Source: Ostrea edulis
Taxonomy: Eukaryota
Assembly (NCBI RefSeq): GCF_947568905.1
Contig: NC_079166.1
Coordinates: forward strand, 38,502,001-38,566,000
Reading direction: 5' to 3'
DNA: 64,000 nt
In this document: in pieces, positions 1 to 14,324 of the stretch
How the letters are laid out: each line of letters opens with the position of its first letter
Position numbering within the stretch: the first letter of the stretch is position 1
The notes under the pieces: model-generated
Told to the model about the DNA's origin: nothing
The model's input: only the letters and a program-made list of their open reading frames with translations
Databases searched by the model: none
Translations under genes and position numbers: made by a program

Positions 1-137
1 ATATTTTTTTTCGTTGGATGGAGGTATTCCACGAAAAAAATAGACGGAAAACTTTTGCATCATGCGCTACGCGCAATAATGCAGTTTTCCGTTGTTGTTT
101 TTTCGTTGAATACCTCCATTCAACGAAGAAATAATAA
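1..137. repeat. Long imperfect palindrome, probably a DNA-transposon terminus cut by the window edge
   Basis: TTCGTTGGATGGAGGTATTCCACGAAAAAA...GGAAAAC / GTTTTCC...TTTTTTCGTTGAATACCTCCATTCAACGAA arms around the centre GCGC-TAC-GCGC (64-74). Confidence 0.7.
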
Positions 138-796
138 ATTCATTCCTTAGATGTAATGCAAATAATTTCAGTGATTTATCCAACACTCGTTGAAAGACAA
201 TTATCTTTTATAAGAAAACAAATACTGGTCACAATGGTGCATGGTAATCAATTTGAAGGTCCGGATGAAATTCATTTCCGAGATAACTAGTGATGGGTAA
301 AATTTGATAAAAGAAATTCTAGCAATTCATTCCGGAATTTGGAGCCGTAAATTGTTATAAGATTTTTTTTTGTTTTTTTTTTGGTTGCAATAAAATCCAG
401 ATTTAGTGTCTTTTCATTTCTATAATTTTTACCTGTAGTAATTCTTATCTGAATCAATATGTTTTTGTATTATGGAAGAGAGCAATCCGTGATGTAAGGA
501 ACATGGATATGATGATGTACACTTATTAAAGGAAAAGGAAAATGTGTTTATGAATAAAATACTTGGGTGTGAAGATCAAATTAGAAAATCCTATGCAATT
601 AATGCAAATAACATAATTTAAGTGATTTATACAACACTTGTAGTAGTTTTTCATAAAAAAGACATACTGGCCAGTATGTATTGACTGTGTGGTAAACAGT
701 TTTATAAGTTATAAATAGCCAGACTTATCAGTAACACAACCGTAAAGGAAATTCCCATCGCTAATTATAGAAAAACAGAATATGGGAAGGAATAGT

Positions 797-876
797 ATGC
801 AAATGCTCGGAAATCACACACAGGTCTTTACTCGACAGTAGAGTATATATACTACACAACATGGTTTCTCTGTTAT
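797..876 (+). promoter_or_regulatory. Type-3 (U6-like) Pol III promoter of copy 1: octamer, PSE candidate, TATA
   Basis: ATGCAAAT at 797-804 (-80), a conserved block CTCGGAAATCRCACACAGG..TT.ACTCGACAGTAGAG, then TATATATA at -33. The same layout recurs at 3362-3441 (octamer variant ATGTAAAT), 4901-4980 and 6890-6969. Confidence 0.65.
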
Positions 877-947
877 GGAAGGTCCGAAGAGTCTAGGTTA
901 TCAATGATGGATTCAATACCCCTAGTTCAGCATTAGACCTCCCTTTT
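877..947 (+). ncRNA. Y RNA / stem-bulge RNA-like Pol III gene, copy 1 (71 nt)
   Basis: GGAAGGTCCGAAGAGTCTAGGTTATC...CCTAGTTCAGCATTAGACCTCCCTTTT. The 5' and 3' ends pair (GG.AGGTC/GACCT.CC), C is at position 9 inside GGTCCGA as in vertebrate Y RNAs, the upper stem is followed by TTATC, and a T4 terminator ends it. TATATATA lies at 844-851 (-33). Confidence 0.8.
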
Positions 948-1172
948 GTTGTTTTAATTACTGACCAGTATATCCATCTACTGATATTCAAAATATTTGA
1001 AAACATGATAACCTGAATCTTACATCATCCATCCTGTATCTTTATTCGTCTGATTGCAATTCATTGATATCTTAAATGATAAAAAGACTCGATTCATAAA
1101 ATCACAGAATGTCATTCTAATACTCCTTTATTTCATTTCATACAAAAACATTGTTTGGATGAAATTATAATA

Positions 1173-1401
1173 CCGAATAGCGGGTTTTTTCCGCGGGGTT
1201 ATAAATTTAGTTTATTTTAGTGGTTAGATGGCTTTCCGCCAAAATTTCAATCGCCAAATATGCACCCAATGGCGACTTCAGTATTTAAAAGAGAGACAAC
1301 TCTCCCCTGTCCGTCCAAATTCATTCCGTCAAAATTGTTAGCATACCTTTCAGCCAGCAAATCGCCAAGTTTTAGACCCGCGGAATAAACCCGCTATACG
1401 G
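1173..1401. mobile_element. MITE with TA TSD (Tc1/mariner-type signature)
   Basis: TIRs CCG(A/T)ATAGCGGGTTT(T/A)TTCCGCGGG at both ends, flanked by TA. The homologous site in the other array units (about 3925 and 5640) is empty. Confidence 0.75.
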
Positions 1402-2171
1402 TATACTAGTAGATTCATTCGTCAAAGATACTGACAGGGTTGCTATCACGATACCCCTATTTCAGAACTTTACTTTCCTTTTCCTCTTTTAATCACTAGC
1501 ACTTCCAACTAAAAATTAAAATATTTGAAATTAGACACTGAAATGTTTATATGATGATTACGATCATGATATTTTGAAAACGAAAGACATGTCAAGAAAC
1601 AAAGACTACATAGAAATGGATGGATAGACCTTCATTCAATTATTATATCAATTTAAAAGACACCGTTCATAGGTACATGCAGTTATATTTTCACCTCAAC
1701 TTAAAAACTTAAAAAGATGCTTTGTTAGTGACAAAAATAATAAAAGTACCCTCTATCTATAATGGATAGCAAAATCGGTTTACAAAACGGATTTATAGAC
1801 AGTAGTAATATACAGACACGTATAGAATATATATATATATAATGTAACAGTTATACATATACTCATTTTACATGTACATATGTAATATAAAATTGGACAC
1901 GATGAATAAGATGTAGCGAGGATGATTATAGTTCAGTTTGATGGACTGGGTGAAATTAATTTCTGAGATGTGCAGATTAAAATTACTACTGTTGGTTAAA
2001 ATTCAAAACGAAATTCTAGCAATTCATTCCACAACTGCGAGCCGTATATTGCAAACAATCTTCTGAATTACTGCATTATCCCCCTTGGGATACACACTGT
2101 ACTGCTTTAACTTGATTTTGTAGGTTTATTGCTAATTTCACTATTTTCTTTTGCAAAAAAAAATAATTCAT

Positions 2172-2960
2172 ATTTATACCGAGCGAAGCTCGGACGGGCC
2201 GAAGGCCCGTCCGCGAAGCAAGGCTCTAAAGGTAACACGTATGTAAAAGAAAAAAGTCAAAATCAGCAAAGGAAAAAGAGATAATCTCTATATACGTTCA
2301 CTGAAATTTTCATGATCCATATGGGCGCCGCCATTTATTTTTTCATTATCCGCTTCAACGTTTATTCGTGTTTTATTTTGAATGCCAATAATAGAAGACT
2401 CTACGTGCAATTCTAATTCAAACACTCAGTTTGTTCAAAGTGAATAGTATAATTATCATTGTAACAGGTTTTAGTACATAAATACATATAAAACCGTAAT
2501 ACGACTAAATAGATGAACGAGTTCATGAGTTTCTTTGAATAAGAATATACGATAACATTACGGTTACTTTTTTACCATTTTGAAGTTATTGGTTAATTTT
2601 GTTTAGTTTTAACGGCCTTTTTCATTGCATACGGAATGTATTATTGTTGTTTATAATTGTTTGCTTTGAAAAAGAGAAAAAAGTCGAGGCTAAATGTGAC
2701 GTCACGATGCACAGTTTACGTCGCCTTGCGTTTTATTTCCTGCGTTCAATGAATAGGCGGATCCCGTAAAACTAATTGTCCCCATATAAACCCCTTTAAT
2801 ACTTAGATGTTACTGGGTGTTTAGCGTAAGGAAAATTTCATTCAAAATATATATTTTTAAATGAATCATAATCTACCGTACTTAACGGAATTATGATTAC
2901 TACTTGGGACACTCCAATGACAATTACATGCTTCGCTCGGTCCAACGGTCACACCGTATA
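2172..2960 (+). mobile_element. Helentron/HINE-type non-autonomous element
   Basis: Sub-terminal inverted repeat ACCGAGCGAAGC (2178-2189) / GCTTCGCTCGGT (2930-2941), 5' mini-hairpin ACGGGCCGAAGGCCCGT, and 3' hairpin ACGGT-CAC-ACCGT (2945-2957). Absent from the other array units. Confidence 0.7.
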
Positions 2961-3441
2961 CATATTAATTTTTTATTTTTGAATTTCTTATCTGAAACGC
3001 TATATTTTTTGTATTATGAAAGAGAGCAGTTATTGATGTATAGAGCATGCATATGATAATGCATTAAAATAAAAAAAAAAGGGGGAAAACAACAACAGAA
3101 AAGAAATTCAACCGTATTTTGATTACACTAGTTCCATTACTTCGGTAGATTTAATTCATCTTTTCATGTGTTTATAAATAAAACACTTGGTGTGAAGATC
3201 AAACTAGAAAATCATATGCAATGCATTAAATTTCAGTGACTTATCAAATACTCGCTCTGGTAAATAACATTTCAAACGTATTATTCACACAACAGCAAGG
3301 GAATCCCCATCGTTAATTATAGAAAAAATAACCCAGAATATGGAAAGGATATCATTATAGTATGTAAATACTCGGAAACCGTACACAGGCAACCATTCGA
3401 CAGTAGAGTATATATACTACACAACATGGTTTCTGTGTTAT

Positions 3442-3512
3442 GGTAGGTCCGAAGAGTCTAGGTTATCAATGATGAATTCAATACCCCTAGCTCAGCATTA
3501 GACCTCCCTTTT
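3442..3512 (+). ncRNA. Y RNA-like Pol III gene, copy 2 (71 nt)
   Basis: GGTAGGTCCGAAGAGTCTAGGTTATC...CCTAGCTCAGCATTAGACCTCCCTTTT; TATA at 3409-3416 (-33); same fold as copy 1. Confidence 0.8.
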
Positions 3513-3585
3513 CCTGTTTTAATCACTGGTCAGTATATCCATCTACTAATGTTTATAATATTTGAAAACATGACAAACTGAATCA

Positions 3586-3793
3586 TGAAAGGTGAAGATA
3601 ACGAACAGTGATCAATTTCATAACTCCTATAAGCAATACAAAATAGAGAGTTGGGCAAACATGGACCCCTGAACACACCAGAGGTAGGATCAGGTGCCTA
3701 GGAGTAAACATCCCCTGTCTGCCGGTCACACTCGCGGTGAACCCTGTATCTTGATCGGGTATAGGGAGTTATCCGTAGTCAAAATCAGTGTGC
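3586..3793 (-). mobile_element. Penelope-like element, 3' end fragment
   Basis: Shares the TGAAAGGTGAAGATAACGAACAGTGATC terminus and 3' UTR with the RT-bearing copies at 44189 and 55069; inserted into array unit 2. Confidence 0.85.
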
Positions 3794-4980
3794 ATCAACA
3801 ATCTTCTATCTTTTATCCGTGAGATTGCGATTACAATATATAAAGATTAATAAAAACATCATCCTGATACTGCTTTATTATGTCTAATTCAAATACATAG
3901 TTTTGGATGTAATGAAAATGTACTAGTAGATGTATTGATGTTCGTCATAGATAGGTGACTGACATAGTCGTTATCACAATACCTCTATCTCAACACCTGA
4001 CTTCCCTGTTGGTCTCCTAATTATAACAGTTCTTCCAGCTACAATTTAAAATATTTGAAAAATTAATGCACACGGAAATCTCAATGATACAAGTCTATTA
4101 ACAATCACGTATGGGGCATCATGAATAATGAAAGACACGTCTCTATCTCGATTTCTACAAAGAAAACACAGGAATGGATGCACGAGCCTGCATTAGTTAT
4201 TATCAATCTAAGGTACCCTCAAATTTTGTTGAAGAATAATAATTGTTATATAATACAAAGCTTGGTATCAAATGAAAAATAATTAACATACACAGTGATT
4301 CACTGAAAGAATTTTCAAAATTGACCAAGACACATGAGGAGTATCTGTAATAGAGATTTTAAAAAAAAGTCTGGCAATGCATTTCGCGGCTGGGAGTCGT
4401 AAATTGTAAAAGATCTTCTAAAATATAATATTTATACGATACATCGCTTTGACTTGATTTAGAAAGTCCGCTGCTGATTTCACTGTTTTGTTTTGCAATA
4501 AAATTGAGAATACGTATCTTTTCATTTTGTAATTTTTACCTGAGATATTCTTTTTGGTATTATGGAAGATAAAATGGAAGATGCATGTGATAATGTATGC
4601 TTTTTACAGAACAAGACTATATGATTTTGTAAGCTGCAACTTTTCAGGGGATTTGATTCTTTTTTGCATCTTCACTTCGTCTGAAGATCAGTTAGAAAAT
4701 CACATGCAATGCAAATAATTTTAATGATTTATCCAGCACACGTTCAAAGATTAGCCAACACCTTTCATACGAAAAAGAATACTGGTCAGCATCTATTGAC
4801 TGTGTGGTAAGTAGTCATGTATAAAACGGTAAAGGAAATCCCCGTTGCTAAAAAAAGAAATACACAATGTTGAAAGGATATAATCATAATACATGTATAT
4901 ATGCAAATACTGGGAAATCGCACACAGGCCTTCACTCGACAGTAGAGTATATATACTACACAACATGGTTTCTGTGTTAT

Positions 4981-5050
4981 GGAAGGTCCGAAGAGTTTAG
5001 GTTATCACGATTGTTTCAATACCCCTAGCTCAGCATTAGACCTCCCTTTT
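4981..5050 (+). ncRNA. Y RNA-like Pol III gene, copy 3 (70 nt, divergent loop)
   Basis: GGAAGGTCCGAAGAGTTTAGGTTATCACGATTGTTTCAATACCCCTAGCTCAGCATTAGACCTCCCTTTT; TATA at 4948-4955 (-33); stems retained, loop changed. Confidence 0.78.
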
Positions 5051-5116
5051 GCTGTTTTGAATTACTGGTCAATATTTCAGTATTACTTACTAATATTTCT
5101 AAAAAAATATTTGAAA

Positions 5117-5450
5117 CCGGTCACAGTGGGAGAGCGTTCGCTTCGTAATCGGGAGGTGGTGAGTTCGATCCCCGCTTGTGTCATGACCGCGTTAAAACTA
5201 AAATGTCAACATAGGTAGTGATTGTTCTTTCGCCAAACACTCGGAATTTAAAAGTGAGAATCACGGATCTTTCGGATATAACTTTAAAACGGAGGTTCCG
5301 TGTCGCGATAGGCGTTGGTACGATAAAGAACCCTCACTGCTACGGCTCTGAGTACTATAAGCTTGGGTCTAATTGTTTGTGGTACTTCACCTACAGTTAG
5401 TGACGTTTCAATATGAGTGAAAATTCTCGACTTTACGTAACAAAACAAAC
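5117..5450 (+). mobile_element. tRNA-headed SINE (Nin/Meta-like core)
   Basis: tRNA-like head with B box GAGTTCGATCCC, core GGTTCCGTGTCGCG...GTACGATAAAGAACCC, (AAAC)n tail, and near-perfect 13-bp TSD AAAATATTTG(A/C)AA at 5104-5116 and 5451-5463. Confidence 0.85.
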
Positions 5451-6969
5451 AAAATATTTGCAAACCTGACCATCTGAATCATATATCAACAATCTTGTAT
5501 CTTTTTTTCCGTGAGATTGCGATTATTGGGTCTTAGAAGTGAATTATAAAGACTCTGTTCATAAAAATCGCAGAATACCATTCTCATACTCTTTTCTTAA
5601 ATTTAATTCGAATACAGTGTTCGAATGTACTTTTAAAATACTAGTAGATGTGTTGATGTTCGACAAAGATAGGGAACGGTCATGGTTGCTATCACGATAC
5701 CCCTATTTCAGCACTTTGATTCCCTTAAATGCTCTTTTAATTATACCAGGTCTTCCAGCTACAATGTAATCTATTTGATCATAAAAATTAATACATACGA
5801 AAATTTCATTGATATATATTTTAACAATGATATGCACCCCCCCCTTCCCCCCGACGATTCTGTTATCATGAATAATGAGAGACACGTCAAAATCTTAATC
5901 CCTACAAAGAATACATGTAATAGAAAAAAAAGATGGACGGGTCTTCACTATTTTATCATTTTCAAAGACACCTTATCATTATTATCATCAACAACATCTC
6001 TAATAATTGATACCCTATATTTATATGGGATAGCAAAATTCGTTTACAAAACTAGTTCGCATTGTTTTCTGGAGAACAGATTTACTGATACTGTAGTAAT
6101 TATGATAATAATATCCTCTATTTATACTAAATAGCACAGAATTAGTTTACATTGTGGTCCTGAAAACAGATTTAATTTACATAACTATTATAAAACTGCA
6201 CACAATTAATGAAATGTACATGTAATGAACATGCTTGTAATGAATTTGATAAGTTGTGTGGAATTAATTTCCGAGATATGTAAATTTAAAATCACTAATG
6301 TTGGATAAAATTTGAAAATAAATTCCAGCAATTCATTCCACAACTGGGAACCGTAAATTGTAAAAGGTCTTTCAACTAACTGTATTTATGCAATGCACTG
6401 CTTTAACTTAATTTAGTAGCTTTACTGCTAATTTTACTGTTTGGTTTTGCAATAAAATTCATCCTTAGTATCTTTTCATTTTTGTAATTCTTATCTGAAG
6501 CACTATATTTTTTTCAATTATGAAAGTGGGAAGTCCTTGATGTATGAAACATGCATATGATGATGCATACCTTTGATTTGAATATCTCTGCAGCAATGGA
6601 ATATGCTTCTGTAAGTTGCAACATTTCAGGGGATTTCATTTTTCTATTTATGCGTTTATGAATAAAACAATTGATGTGAAGATACAATTAGAAAATCATA
6701 TGCAATGCAAATTATTTAAGTGATTTATCCAACACTCGTTCAAAAACTAGTACCTTTGATAAGGAAAAAAGAAGAGGTCAATATCGCTTGAGTGGTCAAC
6801 AGCCATATAAATAGCCAGTCAAACCATCAGCGAAGGGAATCCCCGTCGCTAAATATAGAAAAACAATATTGAACAGATATGATTATAGTATGCAAATGCT
6901 CGGAAATCGCACACAGGCCTTCACTCGACAGTAGAGTATATATACTACACAGCATGGTTTCTGTGTTAT

Positions 6970-7040
6970 GGAAGGTCCGAAGAGTCTAGGTTATCAATGA
7001 TGAATTCAATACCCCTAGTTCAGCATTAGACCTCCCTTTT
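6970..7040 (+). ncRNA. Y RNA-like Pol III gene, copy 4 (71 nt)
   Basis: GGAAGGTCCGAAGAGTCTAGGTTATCAATGATGAATTCAATACCCCTAGTTCAGCATTAGACCTCCCTTTT; TATA at 6937-6944 (-33). Confidence 0.8.
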
Positions 7041-9056
7041 CCTGTTTTGATTACTAGTCAGTTTGATTACTAGTTAGTGTTTCCATCTACTAGCGTTTCG
7101 AATTTGTGAAAACAAACTAAAGAAAACATATAAATCTGAATGAGAATGATTTCCCTACTTTATTATTCCTTTTGTTGTTAACTCACTCCGATCTGGGGTT
7201 ATGGTCTCACTCTGAATTAGGAAGTAATAGAACAGACTTGAATTTACACTACATATAAAAATGCTTGAATATCATTCCATAGCAGATATGTAAAGATTTT
7301 TTTAATCTATTTATGCGTAAAAAATCATGTCCCCTCTAGATAATGATAGGATTTATAGTTCGTAACTGTTATTGTAATGTAAAGGTTTAATGGAAAGGTC
7401 GCTTAGATTTCACTTTTTACAGAAAATTATAAACAAGGAAGAATATTTCTAAATAGCTGCTACTAATATAAATGCACACATTAGGAAGTCTTGTATAAAT
7501 TGACATAGGGAAGTAGTTAACAAATAAAATAAAAGCGAAGGGGGAGGGGGTGTTACAGAAAGGAAAACACACAATAGTTCCTAACAATGTATTCCCCTAG
7601 TGTAACACTCCTAACATAAGTCAATGTAACAAATGATATTGAACCAAATCGGCATTTAATGAAGTAATAACATCTATTTTCGTATAAAATAGATGCCATT
7701 ATTTTACGAGAAATGCTGATATGTATATCAAATTCGGGTGCGGGATATTAGGGCCCGTATGAATAAGTATAAATATAACTCAAAATTACCTATTACTAAT
7801 TCCATATGTATTGTGTTGCCAGTGAATTTGAATCTGTTCTGCGCTATTGAACTATGGTTTGTAAAACTGTTACTGTTGTCAAAGTGAGTGTTTTTATCAT
7901 AACTCCTTGCGTAATTAAGCTAAATATAGGGCTAATTCAACATACTCTAATCAAGTAACCATCCGCGGTTAACCCGGGGTGATCAATTTTGAACTTGTTG
8001 ATTGGTGTTTCATTGTGTGTTGTTGATGTAGTATTTGTGTGGGTTTGCTCGTGCCAAACGTCATTTGGATACAACCATTCCTACGCAGAATACAATTGTG
8101 CTTTTAACGCAGAGTACAAGTAAACCCTTACGGCAGTTTACTATGCAGAGTAATATATAGAATTAAGAATTATATAGCCCATCAGGTGACGCAGTGAATT
8201 CTGGTTTGAATGATATATAGCATTTGGTCAGACCCCCTTCCACTTGCTCTTGACTTTAACACAGTTATAAGATTTCGTGTAAACTGGTCTCAGTCGTTCG
8301 TTTAGAAAAGTGTATTTGCCCTGTACTGTATCATGATCAGTGAAATTTTAAATAGAATTGTGTGAAATATTGCTGTTGGCATTATATTGTATTTCTAGTG
8401 ATATTGTCTTTGTTTTTCAATTTACATATTCAAATGACCGCCGGTAGAAAAGTCAATTTTACAGAAATTATGCTTTTAAACGTGTGTATCACACAAACGT
8501 TTTACGTAATATTTGGTACAATTACATCTCTTTGTACAGAAGTGCTAAGGTCCGCACCACTTTGAGCTGAGTGATTGAATAGAGGAGTCGATAAAATAAA
8601 CACACACCCCATAAAACCTCTCTCACACATGCACCGACTTTATTTGCATATACGTCAGCATGTCAGCATGGTGTCATTTCAGAGGTTGATATTACGCAGT
8701 TTTGTGTATCAAAAACATAAAGAAATAATTTAACATGTAATTTTTAATATTTACAGGCATTATCCTGTTATTCGCTCCGCGGAGCGAATAATATTTGACG
8801 TTGTTGACGTTACGCCAAAACTGTCAATGGAGGAAAAATAGCAACTGAAACAAAAAGCAAAACCTCGAGTACCATCCATTTTGAGAAGGTCAAGTGTTAA
8901 AAATAGGTGAAGGTGCAACTAAATAGAGAGAATATACCTTCGTAATAAACATGAAAATCTGAAGTTTTATTTTATTTGTAGCGTTTGTATTCGTATTGTA
9001 TTTTAAATATAAGATTTATTCAGAAATATATGAATGATATTTTGAAAGATCGTCCT

Positions 9057-9770
9057 TATATATATACTCCTGTTATTCGCACCGGTGCGAATAACAGGAG
9101 TATATATATACAGACGAAGTTTCCATTTCAAGCTAAAACGCTCTAAAAAGGGAAGAATTCCCGGGAAAAGGGTTTCTTTGGGGGAGAGTATATAAAAAAT
9201 GGGGCTTGGAAGTTTTGGGGGTGAATTTCAATGAATACGACATTTAATGAATGAATATAGTGCTAAAATTATTCGCACCGGTGCGAATAACAGGAGTATA
9301 TACAGACGAAGTTTCCAATTTCAAGCTATAACGCTCTAAAAAGGTAAAAAGGGAAGAATTTCGGGTGAATTTCAATGAATATGACATTTAATGAATGAAT
9401 ATAGTGCCATAATTATTCGCACCGGTGCGAATAACAGGAGTATATATATACAGACGAAGTTTCCATTTCAAGCTAAAACGCTCTAAAAAGGGAAGAATTC
9501 CCGGGAAAAGGGTTTCTTTGGGGGAGAGTATATAAAAAATGGGGCTTGGAAGTTTTGGGGGTGAATTTCAATGAATACGACATTTAATGAATGAATATAG
9601 TGCTAAAATTATTCGCACCGGTGCGAATAACAGGAGTATATACAGACGAAGTTTCCAATTTCAAGCTATAACGCTCTAAAAAGGGAAGAATTTCAGGTGA
9701 ATTTCAATGAATATAGTGCTAAAATTTTTAGCACCGGTGTGAATCACAGAAGTATATATATATAGACGAG
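9057..9770. repeat. Internal higher-order tandem repeat with palindromic cores
   Basis: TTATTCGCACCGGTGCGAATAA at 9073, 9269, 9413, 9609 and a degenerate copy at ~9728 (periods 196/144/196/~119). The first copy extends to a perfect 54-bp palindrome at 9057-9110. Confidence 0.9.
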
Positions 9771-12929: not shown

Positions 12930-14324
12930 ATAAAATATTAAAATATTTAACATGATTAAATGAACAATGCTTGATATATCTAAGGGTAATGGTTGAAATT
13001 GACTTCTTCGAAACAGGTTGTAAATTTTTGCAACCGCGGTCTTAACTCAGAAATAACAAAAAATCATGCAAATAAAAATAAAACCGTATTTTTAAAAAAT
13101 CTAATCTTTGAACAATATCAACAGCGTTTTATTTTTTACTTTTTTCTCAAACTTGCAGCGACTGGTAAATTGATTTTCATTGATATGAAGAAAGCGCATC
13201 AAACAAAATTTAGTTCACTTGTATAGGTGAAATATTCATGAACATTTCTTATGGAATTCATGAGTTAACACTTTTGGACATGAATTTTGAAATGTTTGTA
13301 AATTTGACTATGATCAATGTTATTTCATCTGCAGTTCTCTTAAGGTATTCAATGTATAATGACTATATTTCATATCTAATAAATGGATGGTGGAATATTT
13401 GTAATCATGGTATCATTTTGAAGGGTTCATCAAATAAAAATAACCCACGGTAGGAATTTTCTAAATTTTGTTTACTGCTTGATATATTTCACCTAGAATT
13501 TAACATTGAAGTATATGGGAAAAGCATCTTTTATTACAATATTTTAAAAGCAAATTATATATTCATACTAATCTCTTGGTAGAAAGTTACATACACTTTC
13601 TTTTTATGAAAATATGAAATAAAATTAATCATTGACCACACACATTTTTAGAAAATTAGATTTTTCTTATTTTTACAAAGGGCAGACAACTCTTCCAAAA
13701 AGTCTTAAGTGCAAAAAGGTCAGCTTCTAATCATTTACCAGTCATGTGAATTTCATCTGCTTCACTTCCATCATTATTTAACAATAAAGTTTTATGTTGA
13801 TCTAAATCCTTCAAAATTGTTCATTATCCTTTCATTATACATGGAATACCTTAAAGTTTATCGAGAAATCTGCTTAAATAATTTTAAAGAGAGGTAACCC
13901 ATTATAAATGCACGGTGAAGAAAAAGCATTATGGTATTTGTAGAAAAATGTAAATGTAAAGGAGAAATATGCAGATATTGGAAACATGCAAACAACCGTC
14001 CAATTTACATCAAGCACATGTATATATACTGTGCAACACGATTGTTATGTTAATGAGACGGCCCAGACATTCTAGTAACCACTAGGATTACAATGCCCCG
14101 AGCTCCGTACTTGACCTTCATTTGCTACCTGTACCAGTACTTAATTTATCTTAGTGTCACTACATAATTTACCTCAAAACATACCTATCATGGCGGCATT
14201 ATGTTGTACTGCGGACTGATGTTTAGATTGTTAAAATGAGCATGATGACATTTAGTGGTGAGATTAAAGAGAAGTAGTACTTAATAAATAGGGGTTAAAT
14301 TTGTAATTATCTGGAGGCCACCGT

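Follow-up and report, generated by a model that had tools for sequence, protein, structure and literature searches.

Four tandem Y RNA-like genes with a Pol III type-3-like layout in the oyster Ostrea edulis

The window, by which we mean the whole 64-kb stretch of Ostrea edulis DNA that was analysed, holds four intact tandem copies of a 70-71-nt RNA gene, all on the plus strand, and a fifth unit that has decayed. A preliminary description made from the sequence had taken the host for a probable bivalve, and over 42 kb the window indeed matches chromosome OX387706.1 of Ostrea edulis at 100% identity; the positions that it gave for the four copies (877, 3442, 4981 and 6970) and their length of 70-71 nt proved exact. 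The features are given below, promoter elements under copy 1 with their equivalents in the other units.

581..641, plus strand: conserved distal element at about -275 that includes a second octamer (repeat families D5, D8 and D14); equivalents near 3204-3255, 4692-4743 and 6688-6739, and an extra copy at 136-201
747..756, plus strand: GGRAATYCCC palindrome, kappaB-like, about -130; also at 3299-3308, 4834-4843 and 6835-6844
797..843, plus strand: putative proximal promoter, -80 to -34, with the octamer ATGCAAAT at -80 and then a block where a proximal sequence element would lie; equivalents at 3362-3408 (where the octamer is ATGTAAAT), 4901-4947 and 6890-6936
832..858, plus strand: 27-nt block that contains the TATA box and is the same, letter for letter, in the four copies (chance expectation 0); equivalents at 3397-3423, 4936-4962 and 6925-6951
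877..947, plus strand: Y RNA-like copy 1, 71 nt including UUUU; Rfam Y_RNA 26.5 bits (model 1-96), 104 bits with our own model, 17 of 17 pairs standard
948..955, plus strand: second T4 run, 4 nt past the first terminator; TGTTTT invariant in all four units
3442..3512, plus strand: Y RNA-like copy 2; Rfam Y_RNA 26.2 bits; in the alignment it differs from copy 1 by A3U, G34A and U50C
4981..5050, plus strand: Y RNA-like copy 3, 70 nt; Rfam Y_RNA 24.0 bits; by alignment and pair counts its loop is the most divergent, and its C17U retains a U.G pair
6970..7040, plus strand: Y RNA-like copy 4; Rfam Y_RNA 26.9 bits
13906..14206, plus strand: fifth unit, decayed; TATA block retained, lower stem and T4 terminator gone

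In each case the promoter block and the RNA together form a self-contained gene of about 160 bp. All four copies have G as the first nucleotide of the RNA, whose 67 nt are followed by a U4 end; a pattern count with its 22-nt core gave four matches against 0.00 expected by chance. Three marks named in the preliminary description (a loop that starts with UUAUC, a UUUU end, and a TATA box that begins 33 nt ahead of the first G) recur in every copy, the TATA spacing being exact throughout (844 to 877, 3409 to 3442, 4948 to 4981 and 6937 to 6970). The UUUU follows directly 3' of the terminal stem in all four copies; this oligo-U end is a putative La binding site, and in the mechanism that we propose the U tail would bind La.

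The layout also bears out the earlier suggestion of genes like those of Pol III type 3, with TATA at -33, a conserved block from -80 to -34, and a T4 run followed by a second one. The conserved block probably acts as proximal promoter, and the distal element, whose octamers lie at 602, 4709 and 6705, may by analogy be an enhancer; the second T4 run is possibly a back-up terminator. The kappaB-like palindrome has only four matches in the 64 kb, one per unit, where 0.19 would be expected. RNA polymerase III would transcribe each gene from its external TATA promoter and stop at the T run, and the four intact copies are presumably active genes.

The copies are duplicated DNA units of 1.5-2.6 kb. 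Between copies the RNA is 91-99% identical and the stretch from -85 to -1 is 86-95% identical, but identity falls to 53-70% further upstream and to 35-44% in the duplicated downstream flanks. Such a peak of conservation on the RNA and core promoter, set against drifted flanks, would be the footprint of selection. The fifth unit, which the preliminary description had not noticed, has decayed to 56-61% identity, and its RNA-equivalent stretch (about 14054-14123) is 56% identical to copy 4. Our own model gives it 13.3 bits (E 1.6), it aligns collinearly, and its local alignment score is 68, against 22.4 +/- 3.4 for shuffles (z 13.5) and at most 34 for real-sequence controls; it is likely a pseudogene. 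Palindromes flank the modules, and a dispersed repeat (3578-3792) adjoins copy 2. Two open reading frames in the cluster, of 150 aa (5682-6134) and of 79 aa (from the start site of copy 3), gave no database record and no homologue.

One way to read such copies is as heads of retroposons or SINEs, or as some other repeat that resembles Y RNAs, and not as functional RNA genes. Automatic annotation of the golden mussel genome reports 9,316 'Y_RNA' loci (PMC10541798), a hint that some bivalves have a family of Y-like repeats, and the dispersed repeat beside copy 2 points the same way. The oyster locus itself argues otherwise. First, the 64 kb contain nothing beyond the cluster of four copies and one relic, and 108 kb of DNA from other oysters contain no copy. 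Second, the same promoter block precedes every copy at a constant distance, and retroposed copies would not be expected to have it. Third, they arose by duplication of DNA units of kilobase size. Fourth, the RNA ends at its terminator, with neither an A-rich nor a repeat tail, and fifth, the peak of conservation is sharp on promoter and RNA. We regard a repeat origin as very unlikely.

The fold put forward in the preliminary description has 17 of 17 standard pairs in all four copies. This covers both the lower-stem pairs that it listed (G1-C67, G2-C66, A4-U64, G5-C63, G6-C62, U7-A61, C8-G60, G10.U58 and A11-U57) and its upper stem, GAG(U)CUAGG/CCUAGYUC. In the lower stem GGUCCGA stands opposite UUAGACC, with nine standard pairs in every copy; position 9 is a C, and by both the Rfam alignment and the fold the 3' strand places A59 facing it. 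Between the two stems the 3' strand has four unpaired bases, A53-G54-C55-A56, where the 5' strand has A12, and the Rfam alignment puts this AGCA at the bulge position of the Y RNA family. The upper stem of 8 bp carries a 23-nt loop, whose opening UUAUC (positions 22-26) is invariant in all four copies. The minimum-energy fold lacks G10.U58 and A11-U57, the described model being 2 kcal/mol costlier (-13.0 versus -15.0), and the folding energy is no better than that of shuffled sequences (z -0.5 to -2.1, not significant). Both of the two stem substitutions among the paralogues retain pairing, and the other changes affect the loop or position 3, which is unpaired; pair counts revealed no two-sided covariation among the four, which are recent paralogues and count as one observation.

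These substitution patterns also bear on the idea that the conserved modules are DNA elements that make no stable RNA, such as a module with a regulatory or boundary role in the neighbouring adhesion-GPCR locus, kept alike by gene conversion. Gene conversion, instead of selection, could produce the high identity, and the palindromes flanking the modules fit such an element. Against it stand the exact Pol III type-3 anatomy (TATA at -33, G start, paired ends, T4 and second T4), substitutions that respect the RNA fold, and the distance of at least 13.8 kb between the cluster and the GPCR start codon, so that we hold it to be extremely unlikely.

Family membership was examined by searching positions 1-8000 of the window (8 kb) against 4227 Rfam families. 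The best family for all four copies is Y_RNA (RF00019), matched globally (model 1-96) at 24.0-26.9 bits with E values of 0.04-0.23, and in each copy the borders of the match are the start predicted from the TATA box and the end of the T run. At the gathering threshold there were zero matches in the window, the Y_RNA scores lying 11-14 bits short of the required 38. The Rfam Y_RNA model is built mainly from vertebrate sequences. The remaining 56 kb of the window gave no Y_RNA match at E<=10, nor did 108 kb of Saccostrea and Crassostrea DNA at E<=5. The nematode sbRNA family RF01656 (gathering score 38 bits) reached only 18.2 bits (E 6.9), in copy 2 alone. Vault RNA and 7SK had no Rfam match at E<=10 in 1-8000; as for a tRNA or tRNA-derived SINE head, ARAGORN found none in the window and Rfam no tRNA match in 1-8000.

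Published accounts describe the family as having a GGUCCGA lower stem, a UUAUC loop, a 3'-strand bulge and an oligo-U end (PMC4726728, PMC4450293). In canonical members GGUCCGA stands opposite UUGACC and leaves one bulged cytidine, the mark of the vertebrate Ro60 site, and three nucleotides bulge out of the other strand between the two stems. The oyster RNA shares with it GGUCCGA at positions 5-11, C9, the UUAUC loop start, the 3'-strand bulge and the oligo-U end. The upper-stem A/GUG-CAC/U motif (central UG-CA) is absent; CUAG/CUAG takes its place and only the central U-A pair is kept. The UG-CA motif is needed for initiating DNA replication (PMC4450293, PMC4726728). The preliminary description's identification of these loci as Y RNA genes is supported in part, by best family, end-to-end match and agreement of borders, but the scores stay below the gathering score and GUG-CAC is missing. 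Likewise its comparison of C9 with the vertebrate Ro60 site is right about the base at position 9 and not about its setting, since this is no lone bulge and A59 lies opposite.

Against vertebrate Y RNAs (hY1, hY3, hY4, hY5; RF00019) the likenesses run through the whole molecule: a 5' GG..GGUCCGAAG with C at position 9, UUAUC on the 5' side of the loop, a 3-4-nt 3'-strand bulge between the stems, and a 3' strand of ..CA-UU-GAC..CC followed by UUUU. They extend to the genes, which in vertebrates have external promoters with TATA near -30 and lie in tandem clusters (PMC4726728). The oyster RNA differs in its size (67 nt plus U4, versus 84-112 nt), in the C9/A59 mismatch that replaces the lone bulged C, in an A3xC65 mismatch in the terminal stem, and in an upper stem of CUAG/CUAG and not GUG/CAC; its Ro60 binding is putative. 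The stem-bulge RNAs and CeY of nematodes (Boria 2010 and Kowalski 2015, after PMC4450293) are likewise small end-paired stem-loops that have a lower-stem C, carry the motif UUA(U/C)C in the loop and end in oligo-U; they are encoded by multiple paralogues per genome with individual putative Pol III promoters. Like CeY, the oyster RNA is without the upper-stem replication motif; unlike the sbRNAs it lacks the central UG-CA tetranucleotide, and it matches RF01656 in one copy at 18 bits. Homologue candidates of the Y/sbRNA family have been proposed in Anopheles gambiae, Bombyx mori and Branchiostoma floridae (PMC4726728, PMC11825425). These resemble the oyster RNA as invertebrate members proposed from sequence and structure motifs, and they show that the family predates the vertebrates; none of the three species is lophotrochozoan, unlike the oyster.

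A motif pattern found one related gene outside the species, on a metagenome contig (L001:1235-1319). The motifs that the pattern fixed, among them UUAUC and the C9/A59 arrangement, are not independent evidence in this gene. Three of its features do count as independent: a TATA box that begins 33 nt ahead of the inferred 5' end, a T5 end, and compensatory changes on both sides of five pairs, in bases that the pattern left free. In Rfam the gene matches the nematode sbRNA family RF01656 best, at 25 bits, and unlike the oyster RNA it has the central UG-CA of the upper stem. The open reading frames of the contig gave no Pfam signal and its DNA no similarity to oyster DNA. Scans of viral contigs (with two patterns) and of prokaryote genomes returned 0 matches. 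In Saccostrea echinata, S. cucullata and Crassostrea virginica the 10 kb upstream of the orthologous adhesion-GPCR gene likewise contained no Y-like gene; because in O. edulis at least 13.8 kb separate the cluster from the start codon of this gene, which lies downstream, these three loci do not show absence in other oysters.

Could this be a lineage-specific Pol III small RNA that does not descend from Y RNAs, with only a generic end-paired stem-loop and a few short motifs reached by convergence and with another partner and function? The sub-threshold Rfam scores would fit, as would the altered geometry of the Ro60 site (C9 opposite A59), the missing GUG-CAC, and a single relative outside the species, detected with a pattern in which the shared motifs were prescribed. 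Several observations tell against convergence. The Y_RNA match is global and meets gene borders that were predicted independently; GGUCCGAAG, GGUUAUC and the 3' GAC..CC-UUUU all stand at their Y RNA family positions; no other Rfam family gives a comparable match (vault and 7SK absent, sbRNA at 18 bits); and 164 kb of background oyster DNA contains no Y_RNA match. We therefore think an unrelated RNA unlikely, and favour the reading of the cluster as four paralogues and one dead relic of a gene of the Y RNA/stem-bulge RNA family in Ostrea edulis, to which we assign a probability of roughly 0.75.

The oyster RNA resembles a miniature Y RNA, and it extends a known RNA family and is not a new kind of system. 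A further reading, which we hold to be unlikely, is that the oyster RNA and the metagenomic gene form a distinct 'UUAGACC' subclass of minimal Y RNAs in which the cytidine of the Ro60 site is mismatched with A, not bulged, and the replication motif is missing; with promoters that join vertebrate-style octamers to a kappaB-like site, these Pol III genes would be inducible by stress or immune signals, and their mode of recognition or partner would be unlike that of canonical Ro60-Y RNA.

The preliminary description was aware of no characterised molluscan Y RNA, and reviews up to 2025 agree: they cover Y RNAs and sbRNAs of vertebrates, amphioxus, nematodes and two insects, and list none from a mollusc or other lophotrochozoan. 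Our search for literature on molluscan Y RNA or oyster Ro60 met only the automatic mussel 'Y_RNA' count and one mussel transcript with a Ro60 annotation. If credible, an oyster Y RNA would fill the lophotrochozoan gap and support a bilaterian origin of the family; the overall picture of Y RNAs is unchanged by it. Pipelines that apply the Rfam threshold would miss these genes because their scores fall below it, and the genes could therefore seed mollusc genome annotation. As a natural minimal variant (67 nt, C/A mismatch, no replication motif) the RNA also offers a probe of which Y RNA features Ro60 binding requires.

Given family membership, the lower stem would dock a predicted oyster Ro60, an outcome to which we give slightly better than even odds, and Ro60 with the oyster RNA would make up a Ro RNP that serves in RNA surveillance and in responses to stress. 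For oyster biology the cluster is a possible handle on the Ro RNP and on RNA-surveillance stress responses. Ro60 homologues occur in most metazoa (PMC4726728), and the mussel transcript is annotated as 60 kDa SS-A/Ro (PMC6215123).

The preliminary description had proposed a tandem cluster of four Y RNA-like genes, and these genes are present in head-to-tail arrangement, each supported by sequence, repeat search and alignment:

877-947, forward strand, Y RNA-like copy 1
3442-3512, forward strand, Y RNA-like copy 2
4981-5050, forward strand, Y RNA-like copy 3 (70 nt)
6970-7040, forward strand, Y RNA-like copy 4

We interpret the cluster as tandemly arranged oyster genes of the Y RNA/sbRNA type, transcribed by Pol III, four intact and one a pseudogene, and give this reading a probability of about 0.75. 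The predicted RNA is 67 nt long plus U4. A 22-nt core occurs four times, against 0.00 expected by chance, and all 17 pairs of the originally proposed fold are standard in each copy. The UUAUC loop opening and the UUUU end were likewise found in all four, with a second T4 run 4 nt past the first. The folding energies are ordinary (z -0.5 to -2.1); the proposed Y-type fold lies 2 kcal/mol above the minimum-energy fold, and the overall architecture is the same in both. Copy 3 also holds a 79-codon ORF (4979-5218) whose ATG overlaps the RNA start site and whose frame is open across the entire RNA gene; this occurs in copy 3 only, because of a 1-nt deletion there, and the ORF is likely a non-coding gene-caller trap.

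At gathering thresholds, Rfam gave no match in the window. Below them, all four copies matched RF00019 (Y_RNA) over the full model (1-96) at 24.0-26.9 bits, where the gathering score is 38 (E-values 0.04-0.23, in a search of 8 kb with 4227 families). The borders of these matches coincide with the TATA-predicted start and the T-run end. Nematode sbRNA (RF01656) came next among the relevant families, with 18 bits in one copy only. As background, Y_RNA gave no match at E<=10 in the remaining 56 kb of the window and none at E<=5 in 108 kb of Saccostrea and Crassostrea DNA. A tRNA-like identity was considered and rejected, no tRNA-like fold being present.

The oyster RNA shares with the published Y RNA/sbRNA family (PMC4726728, PMC4450293) the conserved GGUCCGA, which places a C at position 9, as well as AGCA as a bulge of 3-4 nt in the 3' strand, UUAUC in the loop and an oligo-U tail. 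It differs in its 3' strand, UUAGACC, where an extra A59 opposite C9 creates a C/A mismatch in place of a lone bulge. The upper stem is CUAG/CUAG rather than GUG/CAC, with the central U-A pair alone retained, and relative to the Rfam consensus the upper helix is preserved through two-strand changes. The RNA is far shorter than the 84-112 nt of Y RNAs (PMC8973356) and, like C. elegans CeY, it is missing the replication motif; it is useful as a natural minimal variant.

Type-3 Pol III promoters, as in the vertebrate U6, 7SK and Y genes, combine a TATA box, a proximal sequence element (PSE) and distal octamers. The four copies share, without a single difference, a 27-nt block that includes the TATA box; in each the TATA box starts exactly 33 nt ahead of the first G, the spacing originally described. 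Upstream of this block, a conserved stretch (-69 to -34, relative to the first G) occupies the PSE position. An octamer at -80 is the exact ATGCAAAT, reading ATGTAAAT in copy 2, and another element with an octamer is found near -275; the cluster holds 7 of the window's 17 octamers, these 7 all on the forward strand. The arrangement parallels type-3 promoters, and each gene would be transcribed by Pol III. Two further motifs accompany the genes:

747-756, 3299-3308, 4834-4843, 6835-6844, kappaB-like palindrome GGRAATYCCC, one per duplicated unit, about 130 nt upstream of each gene
664-677, 958-971, 3524-3536, 4779-4792, 5063-5075, near-palindrome ATACTGGYCAGTAT

The former has these four matches in 64 kb against 0.19 expected. 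The latter lies on either side of the modules, at about -213 and +83, is found nowhere else in the window, and may be a binding site, a recombination junction or an element end.

Repeat search showed the copies to be embedded in duplicated units of 1.5-2.6 kb, whose similarity depends on position.

Pairwise identity between units
RNA, 91-99%
Core promoter (-85 to -1), 86-95%
-140 to -86, 74-89%
Far upstream, 53-70%
Beyond +150, 35-44%

Eight RNA positions vary among the copies: five in the loop, one at unpaired position 3 and two in stem pairs, both of whose substitutions keep pairing (C-G to U.G, G.U to G-C). Building a covariance model from the four copies, as had been suggested, we detected a fifth, decayed unit that the preliminary description lacks:

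~13,906-14,206, fifth unit, TATA block kept, promoter-collinear

Its RNA-equivalent stretch (14,054-14,123) retains only 56% identity to copy 4, its promoter 61%, and it has lost the lower stem and T4 terminator. In local alignment it scores 68, where shuffled sequences score 22.4 +/- 3.4 (z 13.5) and 138 real-sequence controls at most 34. The relic is genuine, and it pictures an unconstrained copy that offers a neutral reference for the intact four. Its decay beside four intact genes therefore argues for purifying selection on the latter, possibly aided by gene conversion.

For relatives elsewhere we used the pattern GGTCCGAAG, gap, GGTTATC, gap, TTAGACC. Viral contigs and 596 Gb of prokaryote genomes gave no match; one metagenome contig did, L001 (Ga0081606_1054241). 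Its Y/sbRNA-like gene, L001:1235-1319, presumably eukaryotic, measures 85 nt and is built on the same plan. Outside the pattern, it has a TATATAA box that begins 33 nt upstream of the inferred 5' end, T5 directly after the terminal stem, the third-position terminal-stem mismatch of the oyster RNA, and five two-sided compensatory pair changes (oyster pairs 2-66, 4-64, 14-51, 15-50 and 19-47). Its Y-type fold has an energy of -29.1 kcal/mol, and the minimum-energy fold one of -31.3 kcal/mol. In Rfam, nematode sbRNA RF01656 matches the gene best (25 bits), and the UG-CA upper-stem motif is present; the oyster-only covariance model gives it 28 bits. A UUCG-capped hairpin lies within its loop. L001 supports the family reading, not decisively, because it is a single sequence and the shared motifs were pre-selected by the pattern.

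Ro60 homologues occur in most metazoa (PMC4726728), and a mussel transcript is annotated 60 kDa SS-A/Ro (PMC6215123). The oyster RNA would be expected to bind La. Given family membership, we rate binding to Ro60 at even or slightly better, because the C9 context is unlike the vertebrate site. Y/sbRNA reviews of 2015 and 2025 name no mollusc among the animals they list, which are vertebrates, amphioxus, nematodes, Anopheles and Bombyx. Our literature searches found no characterised molluscan Y RNA; the preliminary description was aware of none. The sole molluscan trace in the literature is the golden mussel annotation (PMC10541798), where 9,316 'Y_RNA' loci were counted automatically; these look like a repeat family. 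The oyster RNA is useful as the first lophotrochozoan candidate; it adds a candidate member to a known RNA family, and will not surprise the field.

The source, first called a probable bivalve, is confirmed as one, the European flat oyster Ostrea edulis, by identity of window positions 10,845-52,868 to GCA_947568905.1 OX387706.1:38,512,845-38,554,868 (100% over 42,024 bases). Mapping a Saccostrea adhesion-GPCR protein by tblastn located a collinear adhesion GPCR orthologue at 20.8-42.9 kb:

20845-42865, adhesion GPCR gene, O. edulis LOC125673109, with D8C, Ig, GAIN/GPS and 7tm_2 domains (~27-31 tblastn matches)

The Ostrea edulis protein matches at ~95-100% per exon, and the gene has orthologues in Saccostrea, Crassostrea virginica and Magallana gigas. 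At least 13.8 kb separate the cluster from the GPCR start codon downstream of it. In Saccostrea echinata, S. cucullata and C. virginica, no Y-like gene was found in the 10-kb flanks of the orthologous locus, a negative that does not refute conservation in other bivalves. ORF-keyed look-ups for further assemblies of the cluster gave no match. Just downstream of copy 2 lies a dispersed repeat of ~200 bp (3578-3792), probably SINE- or MITE-like and common to ostreids; five copies with 68-85% identity occur in each of the S. echinata and S. cucullata loci. At 9050-9763, 340-bp repeats lie in tandem and contain internal units of 100 nt; the hairpin at 9050-9117, with sub-threshold Rfam miRNA-precursor matches (mir-3149, 39.8 bits, gathering score 100), is most likely a hairpin-forming repeat.
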